DNA of 64,000 nucleotides from Oikopleura dioica (lineage: Eukaryota > Animalia > Chordata). The stretch's first letter is position 1. Each line of letters opens with the position of its first letter. The translations under genes were made by a program, and so were the position numbers. Shown here one piece after another: positions 29,916 through 32,900 of the stretch. The stretch spans positions 4,464,001-4,528,000 of the forward strand of contig OU015567.1 in assembly GCA_907165135.1 (NCBI GenBank), in the 5' to 3' direction. A model generated the notes under the pieces. That model did no database searches, was not told where the DNA came from, and saw only the letters and a list, made by a program, of their open reading frames with translations.

Positions 29916-32900
29916 GTGACTCCAGCGCTAATCATCAACCTGATCGCATTATGCGTAAATATTCCACAATTCATGACATGGTATCCGTGGCTGTTTTACC
30001 TGACGATGACAGTCGATGTTTTTTGCTTCATAATTTTGTCTGTTGATCTTGTCCATCGATACAAGCTTGCCTCGAGATCGAACCAGATGACGGAAGGTCC
30101 GAGGCTAAAGAAGATGTTTTTCTTTGATGTTTTTCTCACTGTTCTGATTCTTCTATCGGCTTTGCTTCAGGAAGGGCTCTAGAAAAGAAAAGATTATTCC
30201 TCGTCATTCTTAAGAGCAAATGAAGGGAGTTGAGCTCGTGGATAAACTTCTAGCAGAAGAAAAACGACCAGTTGAAGATGAAATTTCAAAGAAATACTTT
30301 TTCAAATTCATCCGGCGAACAATCCGCGCTCCACGCCCTGGGCTCATGATTTGGATTTGGCGAAACTGCACTCCTCTCCGCTTACCCCAGTCATCTTATA
30401 ATCTGATTGTCAAAAAAGCGGGCCAGCAAATTTGGGGCGTAACGCTGTTTTTGCTTTTCTTTCTTGTTTTCTATGGAATACTTGGCGTTCAATTATTTGG
30501 CAATTTTGAGTACCATTGTGTTCGAAGAAAATCAAATCGAGGAGAGAGTCAAGAAAAGTATTTCAAACGACTTTTGGAAGGAGATGTTTCGTATGGAGAT
30601 CTTGCCATTCCTGATCGCCACTGCAGCCCTTTCGCCAAGCTTGGAGAACAAGGGTCCTGCCCGCCAAAGCTCACCTGCCAGAAACTTGGCCTTAACGCAA
30701 CTCAACGAGGCTGCACCGGCTTTGAAAACATCATCACATCCGTCAAGACCGTCTACGAAGCTGCTAGTCAGGAAGGGTGGATCTATTTGATGTACAATAC
30801 CACAGATGCGTATCCGGTTTGGCACGGCTATGTTTACTTTATTTCCATGATTTTCTTCCTTGCTTGGCTCGTCAAAAACGTTTTCATTGCAGTTGTCATC
30901 GAGACGTTTGCGGAGATCCGAGTTCAGCTGAACAACATCTGGGGCAGCTCTAGAAGGGGAAAAACGGATTCGGTTGGCCCAACTCCCGCCGAGTATGAAC
31001 GTGCAGGAGGTGTCAGGCCGAGTGAAGGAGATGCAAGGGACCACGCCGCCGGTGTTCACTCCTGCAGAGACTGCTCCTGGGCCAAAGTTGGAGCAAGTCT
31101 CGGTGTGAAACCTTGAGTAAACATAAACTGGGGGCATCTTGAGCCAGAGATCATGATCAAGCTTCGCCTGGATGATCTTCAAAAATGAAGATTTGGAAGA
31201 CAGCAAAAATGGAATTTTCTGAAAAATTATCATCTAGGGTAAAATTTATCGCTGATCACGATAATGAAGTCGTTTTTTGTTATTACTGTCAAAAATTCAA
31301 GATGAATCTCGCTCTCGAGTATCCAGATCTTGATCGACAGGCCCCTCTTGTTCGTAAATTCAGCTAGAAGAAATCGTTTGTTGACCACTGAATTTGTACC
31401 GGGATGAAAGAAACTGATTCTGGTGATGTTCATCTTTGGGCCATTTTCTCTCGAATGCTTTTCTTCTCAACGGCGTCTTTGACCTGTGCGCCCCAATGTC
31501 ATAACAATATCATAGTTACTTTCAAACCGGAAGTAATTAAGATTGTTACTTTGATTCAAGCAGCTGATAATAATTGGAAGTGATCTATTTCGAAAATTTA
31601 TCATCAAAAGACCTTAACGATAGCGCCATCAGAATCAGTATCAAATTTTACGCTGTCATGGAAGTTTTCAGAGAATTCTAATTCTGAGTCTTCCATATTT
31701 TCAGTTTTGAAGATCATCCAAGCTAAGCTTGATCATGATCTCTGGCTCAAAATGCCCCCAGTTTATGTTTACTCAAGGTTTCACACCGAGACTTGCTCAA
31801 GCTTGGGCCCAGGAGCAGTCTCTGCAGGAGTGCACACCGGCGGCGTGGTCCCTTGCATCTCCTTCACTCGGCCTGACACCTCCTGCACGTTCTCACTCAG
31901 CGGGAGTTGGGCCAACCGAATCCGTTGTCACCCCTCTAGAACCCAAATCGAGGAGAAACCTCGGCAGCCAGTTTTACACGCGGTGGGGCCAGATATGACA
32001 ACTCTAGAACTAGTCGACGACGATGAAAATGACGATGATCATCCTTCTTCGCTTTCGCGTTTTCGCATCTTTCGTCATTTGAAATTTCGCGCTCGGACAC
32101 TCGACAGTAAGTGGTTCAAGCGATCGATGATGGCGATGGTGAGCTGTTCAGTCATGATGGCGGGATATTATGACACGACAGAGTGGAAAGAAGAAACTGA
32201 CAGAATTCGGGTTGGTTTGGAATGTTTTTTCGTCATTGTTTTCCTGATCGAAGCGCTGGTGAAAATCAAATTTCTTGGCTGGAATTACTACATGAAATTC
32301 AGCCTTCATCGATACGAGCTTTTTCTGGTGATCATCGGAACAGTTGGTCTTCCTCTTTCCCGACTTCAAGCTTGGTCCCCTTATTTTCGCTGCGTTCCTG
32401 TTCTCCGAACTCCTCGATTGATCCGCGTTTCAAGCCGTTTAGAATGTTTCATCGCGAAGATCTTCGGCCCAGGGAAGAAGATGGTCCTCTTACTTGCTGG
32501 AAGTCTTTCGATTATTCTCTGCATGGCAATGGTTTCTATGCAGCTTTTTGCTACAGACACTTGCGAGCCTCTTTCGACAGAACTTCATCGAAACCATTTT
32601 TGCGATTTTCCAAGAGCGGCGATGGCCATGTTTCAGATTTTGACGCAGGAAGATTGGGTTGATGTGATGAATCATACGAGCTCTGGAACTTCACAGCCCT
32701 TTGTCATCATGTATTTTATTTTCTACCATTTCTTCGCCACAACAGTTTTACTCTCTGTTTTCGTCGCCGTCATCCTAGACAACCTCGAGCTCGAAGAAGA
32801 ATTGAAAAAGATCAAACAATTGAAAATGCGACAGATTTCTGCCGACAAAGGCGAAAAACTACCATGGAGAATCCAGCTCTTCAATCGTTTTCCGAATCGG

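Follow-up and report, generated by a model that had tools for sequence, protein, structure and literature searches.

Transposon-born introns are an established concept, and the closest described systems are the introners and the introns of a larvacean. Introners of Micromonas, Aureococcus and other organisms (Huff, Zilberman and Roy 2016; reviewed in PMC11282704) are short, number in the hundreds to thousands, sit at intron positions and have had their splicing shown on RNA. In Fritillaria borealis, non-canonical introns derived from miniature inverted-repeat transposable elements (MITEs) have been described (Henriet et al. 2019, following the summary in PMC11282704): insertions with terminal inverted repeats (TIRs) occupy species-specific coding positions, are handled by a permissive U2 spliceosome, and have given introns that are numerous, fixed, RNA-supported and mostly of the AG-AC or AG-AT type. 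Here we describe a 978-bp TIR element that interrupts a coding exon of NALCN, a neuronal channel gene, in Oikopleura dioica (assembly GCA_907165135.1, contig OU015567.1, positions 4,464,001 to 4,528,000, forward strand); the window, in the following, is this whole stretch of 64,000 nucleotides, and all positions refer to it. A third point of reference are transposon alleles that disrupt exons and segregate in populations. Such alleles are young, of low frequency and heterozygous, they carry a precise target site duplication (TSD), and in them a retained element shifts the frame and leads to an early stop.

The element in the window can be compared with each of these. Like introners, it is a non-autonomous, TIR-bearing DNA transposon that lies with its TSD inside coding sequence, where the TSD could give the AG and the element the other splice site; unlike introners, it is a single 978-bp copy on one haplotype, with splice sites that are only candidates. 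With the introns of F. borealis, as far as the cited summary describes them, it shares the larvacean host, a TIR insertion at a species-specific coding position and a permissive U2 spliceosome; in contrast to them it is a single polymorphic insertion that offers, at best, a donor starting with G and an AG acceptor. In its youth, heterozygosity, precise TSD and predicted frame shift it resembles the ordinary segregating alleles, although the tolerant splicing of O. dioica makes a rescue more plausible here than in most animals. In our reading the locus carries an ordinary insertion allele that segregates and is probably loss-of-function or strongly hypomorphic, and we give this reading a probability of roughly 0.55.

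The insertion point lies in a coding exon of NALCN, just past the sixth segment of domain I (DI-S6) at the start of the I-II linker. Two inverted arms of 253 nt (30949-31201 and 31688-31940) are 93% complementary and enclose a spacer of 486 nt. They overlap a direct repeat of 8 bp, CTCTAGAA, found at 30948-30955 on the left and at 31934-31941 on the right (+ strand), and the bases adjacent to the two copies on the outside differ. Because the TSD is 8 bp long, the element itself measures 978 bp (30956-31933). Its left TIR (30956-31201, + strand) begins with the tip GGGGAAAAACGG, and the right TIR (31688-31933, - strand) ends on the + strand with GTTGTCACCC, a pyrimidine-rich stretch directly before the TSD. 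Each TIR carries a GT 38 nt inside its end, in the contexts GA|GTATGA (left, donor-like, at 30993) and GA|GTGAGA. The initial annotation had recognised a long-TIR element splitting this exon, which is borne out by the arms and by the two exon halves, both of which match human NALCN. It had taken the duplication for the 6-bp TCTAGA; a duplication does flank the element, at 8 rather than 6 bp, and the size of the element changes with it.

No Pfam family was found above the cut-off within the element, no Rfam match was obtained there, and an embedded RNA gene was rejected on the latter result. We classify the element as a non-autonomous DNA transposon without transposase and belonging to a multi-copy family. 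The only coding trace is a 60-aa open reading frame (ORF; 31185-31364, + strand) with a weak signal of a BED-like, C17orf113-type zinc finger (Pfam PF25431, E 0.0076, below cut-off). Its atlas neighbours belong mostly to zf-BED/ZBED5/GT2D2 clusters, all at 0.90 or less and thus a lead only, and the ORF may be a remnant of the N-terminus of a hAT transposase. Further copies of the element were not found within the window. Two metagenome scans with 20-21-mers of the TIR gave no hit in the first and one chance 21-mer match (contig L003) in the second.

A search for public RNA runs gave none, and one open to any kind of run gave seven contig sets, of which four (X1, X2, X3 and X6) were aligned to window positions 29900-35600. 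All four represent DNA, since the short introns of the gene are kept in them. An exact skip of 986 nt, which is the element plus one TSD copy and marks the empty site, was found in X2 (an 842-nt contig of depth 116) and in X6 (a 3349-nt contig of depth 95), in both of which 30947 is joined to 31934 with 8 ambiguous letters, as well as in X1, where the empty-site contig has a depth of 76.5. X1 holds 80% of the 31-mers of the stretch and is probably the source sample. Two haplotype contigs run along the gene in this set, one of depth 87 with 24 differences and one of depth 91 with none, and the empty-site contig reaches only some half of the summed depth of the flanks. Letters specific to the copy in the window (31233 and 31286) occur in X1 at a depth of about 85, one haplotype's worth, and no contig of X2, X3 or X6 contains them. 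From these contig depths the source animal was probably heterozygous for the insertion, with the reservation that a contig is better evidence for presence than for absence. None of the listed short-read contigs bridges either insertion junction.

The same contig sets show that the element belongs to a family. In each of the four runs the contig depths over the element add up to between several-fold and about 40-fold the depth of the flanks, and variants with internal deletions occur in all of them, for example one joining 31207 to 31336 with the filler TACA in X1, X2 and X6. On the grounds of this excess depth and of the shared deletion variants, the family is multi-copy, and it is also present in the sample labelled organism B.

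Uninterrupted coding sequence at the insertion site (GSSRTQ) is found well beyond these runs. The metagenome contigs L001 and L002 from the European Nucleotide Archive (ENA), the latter representing a third lineage, have the empty site in DNA, and so does the scaffold of O. dioica Bergen (L004; NCBI GCA_000209555.1, FN654483.1). A predicted protein fragment that crosses the site, P0201, reads ...SSRTQVEDKLRQ with GSSRTQ uninterrupted, and two further fragments, P0035 and P0152, also run across the site without interruption; the contigs just named encode these fragments. All high-identity protein matches were fragments of at most 429 aa, and none came from the annotation of the window itself. 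Empty sites in independent samples, contigs and proteins thus make GSSRTQ the ancestral state across the species complex and the insertion the derived one. Among the DNA runs, the metagenome contigs and the Bergen scaffold, the insertion was seen on no other haplotype or lineage: it is derived, young and known from one haplotype only. This is the empty-site comparison which the initial annotation had proposed.

If the element were kept in the transcript, the consequence for the protein can be read from the frame. The insertion adds 986 nt (986 mod 3 = 2); as this is not a multiple of 3, read-through meets a TGA at 31114-31116 (+ strand, closing the ORF 30220-31116), 53 codons on. The predicted product would contain domain I only, followed by 53 foreign residues. 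According to our preferred reading, a non-autonomous cut-and-paste DNA transposon has recently jumped into the exon where DI-S6 ends and the I-II linker begins, on one haplotype, with the second haplotype and every other animal or lineage sampled keeping the uninterrupted exon, and the resulting allele is most likely recessive and either loss-of-function or strongly hypomorphic. Gene density in O. dioica is about 1 gene per 3.7 kb (PMC8008620), so that a random new insertion will often hit an exon. It is the single haplotype, the weak donors, the chance-level frame, the long and structured candidate intron and this gene density that lead us to favour loss of function. From the frame, the weak splice signals, the rarity of the allele and the high rate at which exons are expected to be hit in so gene-dense a genome we infer that loss of function is most likely. 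The initial annotation had itself named a rare heterozygous null allele as a case that would count against it; heterozygosity and the single haplotype approach that description, with the allele a putative null.

The strongest rival is that the insertion is a newborn intron, i.e. that a permissive spliceosome removes the element and the allele encodes a working channel. We regard this as possible and hold it at somewhat above one chance in three. The acceptor would be formed by the pyrimidine-rich TIR tip and the AG of the right TSD (31938-31939), the donor by position 30957, by position 30993 or by another site, and the hairpin would draw the two ends together. The sequence does allow the element and its TSD to supply splice sites, through the TSD AG behind the pyrimidine-rich tip and the GT in each TIR. 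Removal of 30957-31939 (+ strand; a candidate GG-AG intron of 983 nt) would yield ...GSSRRTQ, with one additional arginine and no stop, since the TCT AGA of the duplication is in the upstream frame at 30949-30954 and in the downstream frame at 31935-31940. An alternative candidate, a GT-AG intron of 947 nt (30993-31939, + strand), came from pair enumeration and would add 13 aa in the disordered linker. We enumerated all donors starting with G in 30850-31119 against all AG in 31880-32009 and found 231 of 729 pairs to be in frame and free of stops, which equals the third expected by chance; several further in-frame pairs use downstream acceptors. An in-frame pair as such is therefore expected by chance and says little. 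An exact removal that leaves no scar was rejected, because the intron (30954-31939) would have to be of the AA-AG type, and AA is not known as a donor.

The donors are the weak part of this scenario. When matches to the U1 consensus CAG|GTAAGT were scored by hand, the GG donor AAG|GGGAAA reached 4/9 and the GT donor at 30993 reached 5/9, in comparison to 6-7/9 for the real NALCN donors CAG|GAAGGG and CAG|GTTGGT. The hexamer GAAGGG of the former donor recurs at the left junction (30953-30958) and is the best look-alike of a GA donor there; combined with the TSD acceptor it would produce a 987-nt intron that shifts the frame. The candidate intron is also about 20 times the length usual for the species, in which the median intron measures 49 bp (PMC8008620), and it would be locked in double-stranded RNA: the predicted fold of the element RNA is a near-perfect 250-bp stem that encloses both candidate splice sites. 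This stem could bring the splice sites together or hide them. The predicted junction SSRRTQ was present in no database protein in representative and homologue searches, where the high-identity matches were all fragments of the length stated above, and the allele occurs on one haplotype only.

Several observations weigh against our preferred reading and in favour of splicing. The right end of the element is a good acceptor look-alike, CACCCCTCTAG|A, and its final octamer is the real acceptor of the first NALCN intron (29904-29911, CTCTAG|AA). The initial annotation was right to point to this acceptor with its pyrimidine run. NALCN moreover has a GA-AG intron of its own, 55 nt long (30171-30225, CAG|GAAGGG...ATGAAG|GG). 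About 11-12% of O. dioica introns are non-canonical, and among these GA-AG introns are common and supported by RNA-seq (PMC8008620, PMC7072748); MITE-derived introns are documented in Fritillaria (PMC11282704). The donor of the 55-nt intron fits the AG|GA-A context published for GA-AG introns of O. dioica (PMC7072748). Finally, the NALCN of the Bergen lineage, which is described below, has stayed conserved despite lineage-specific long introns and an exonic hAT-type MITE. The window contains 14 copies of the octamer CTCTAGAA, as opposed to 3.06 expected from shuffles, for instance at 29904, 30177 (inside the 55-nt intron), 30948, 31934 and 32002; this excess may reflect a preferred form of the acceptor or a preferred insertion target. 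We also considered a terminal hairpin in the 55-nt intron and rejected it, as its fold was no better than that of shuffled sequences (z = 0.19).

Carrying the idea further, the family could be introner-like, here in a chordate: the TIR tip would provide the 3′ pyrimidine tract in either orientation, the CTAG of the TSD the acceptor and the GT about 38 nt inside the donor, the 250-bp stem would place both sites close to each other, exonic copies would be spliced out, and the NALCN allele would be a functional gene with a very recent intron. We consider this unlikely, at about the level of one chance in five, and the features just named are what suggests it.

The initial annotation had singled out one version of the newborn intron, the GG-AG pair 30957-31939 with its additional arginine, and had taken the locus for intron gain by a transposon caught in the act. 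The arithmetic is correct, and the pair would leave the smallest in-frame scar, in an AG|G exon-intron context. GG donors are reportedly used in Oikopleura (Denoeud et al. 2010). As a sign of an intron, the pair nevertheless carries little weight, being one of 231 in-frame options and having the weakest U1 match among the candidates scored; the study of O. dioica splice sites documents GA-AG but not GG-AG introns (PMC7072748). We judge this specific version improbable. The wider proposal of intron gain found no support, given a heterozygous insertion on one haplotype, a frame at chance level and no protein with the junction. An assembly artefact, in which a repeat misassembly placed the element in the exon, might be suggested by the multi-copy family and by the lack of a listed short-read contig across a junction, but it is highly improbable in view of the duplicated 8 bp, which are exactly the octamer of the empty site and thus the signature of true transposition, and of the probable source sample X1, with its 80% of the 31-mers, its copy-specific letters at single-haplotype depth and its empty-site contig at no more than some half of the summed flank depth; the initial annotation had allowed for such a chimera.

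The superfamily of the element was approached through its TSD and TIRs. The hallmarks of hAT transposons are an 8-bp TSD, usually of the form nTnnnnAn, and short TIRs starting with YARNG. CTCTAGAA has a T at position 2 and an A at position 7 and so agrees with the first; the tips GGGGAAAAACGG and GGGTGACAACGG and the TIRs of about 250 nt disagree with the second. The TSD of this form and the zinc-finger remnant point weakly to hAT, and the element is probably hAT-related; GGGG tips and 250-nt TIRs are atypical of hAT. TIRs of Foldback (FB) elements consist of tandem subrepeats, and Foldback and Mutator-like elements have TSDs of at least 9 bp. The very long TIRs (253-nt arms) would suit that group, whereas the 8-bp TSD and the arms, in which Tandem Repeats Finder (TRF) detected no tandem subrepeats, do not. 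The term 'foldback', used in the initial annotation, consequently holds for the shape of the element, and membership in the FB family was rejected.

The host gene (29853-36194, + strand) was delimited by ORFs, by matches to human NALCN structures and by intron borders, the latter read from the sequence and from comparison with contig L002. Its best matches in the Protein Data Bank (PDB) are human NALCN, with E 5e-63 (domain I) and E 2e-70 (domain II); Cav and Nav channels match the exon ORFs far less well. The ORF translations contain the pore motifs SQEGW, TQEDW, SLKGW and TGEDW, i.e. the E/E/K/E filter of NALCN. Judged by these translations the gene is a complete four-domain NALCN and otherwise intact, in agreement with the initial annotation. 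The upstream part of the split exon (30226-30955, + strand) covers DI S4 to S6 and ends in ...NNIWGSSR, with ...QLNNIWGS aligning to ...QFQQMWGS338 of the human protein (E 5e-63). The downstream part (31942-32999, + strand), which encodes the DI-DII linker and domain II, aligns with human residues 383-671. Besides the GA-AG intron there are four GT-AG introns on the + strand, the first at 29872-29909 and the others at 33000-33039, 34942-34981 and 35444-35486. The GA-AG intron is absent from L002, in which DNA reads straight through LLQGVELV, and is kept in the DNA runs. The nearest named protein is P0152, an 'unnamed protein product [Oikopleura dioica]' at NCBI. The Bergen scaffold which encodes it is only 71-85% identical to the window in DNA, so the O. 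dioica lineage of the window is not that of the Bergen reference.

NALCN of this Bergen lineage carries insertions of its own. A 287-bp hAT-type MITE lies in the coding exon for S1 of domain II (L004:8063-8349, equal to L001:1418-1704). It has the classical marks of hAT, with perfect 13-nt TIRs (CAGGGATGTAAAT...ATTTACATCCCTG) and the 8-bp TSD CTACAGAG, and its empty site is present in the window (32176-32183) and in L002. L001 and L004 differ by 7 mismatches and one gap over 1883 nt (99.6% identity) and so come from independent individuals. Retention of the MITE would shift the frame (295 nt), and P0035 meets a stop. In Bergen and window NALCN the protein is 95% identical and the DNA 85%; because the protein has stayed this similar while the DNA has diverged, the MITE is probably spliced out as a transposon-born intron. 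It resembles the window element in gene, species complex, coding location, 8-bp nTnnnnAn TSD and frame shift if retained. It offers an in-frame CAG|GG...AG option. Unlike the window element, to which it is unrelated, it is 287 bp long with 13-nt TIRs and occurs in two independent individuals, which argues for tolerance. Of the two, the Bergen MITE is the better candidate for a transposon-born intron.

Two larger introns are also specific to the Bergen scaffold. One of about 1.2 kb lies in the DI pore-loop exon (L004:~6344-7526, corresponding to window ~30669-30675), and neither the window nor L002 has it. In the gene model it is a GA-AG intron (AAG|GAAGGT...ATGACAG|AAT), and it contains a pair of 45-nt inverted repeats (6633-6677 and 6822-6866). 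The other occupies a site after ...EGDVS (window 30585/30586), where the window has no intron and L002 (~724-769) has a 46-nt GT-AG intron; in Bergen it is a 5-kb intron (L004:1236-6257) in which an astacin/MAM/MATH gene of 734 aa lies nested in the opposite orientation. Since Bergen NALCN is 95% identical to that of the window despite an exonic MITE in two individuals and introns of 1.2 and 5 kb, insertions of the size of the window element can, to judge by this comparison, be tolerated as introns in O. dioica, a further point for splicing and against loss of function. At its 5′ end (L001:1-222), L001 diverges from Bergen and gives an inverted match to a short repeat at L004:1432-1541 and 6633-6716; this represents a further small mobile element that is polymorphic between these individuals.

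As it stands, the insertion in the window is a well-documented polymorphic transposon insertion: the insertion itself, its TSD, its polymorphism and the multi-copy state of its family are observed. If the element were spliced, an intron in a conserved neuronal channel gene of a chordate would have been caught while still polymorphic. With the Bergen MITE and the lineage-specific long introns, NALCN is a convenient locus for testing transposon-driven intron gain, and the ancestral and derived alleles within one population provide the material for a direct test.

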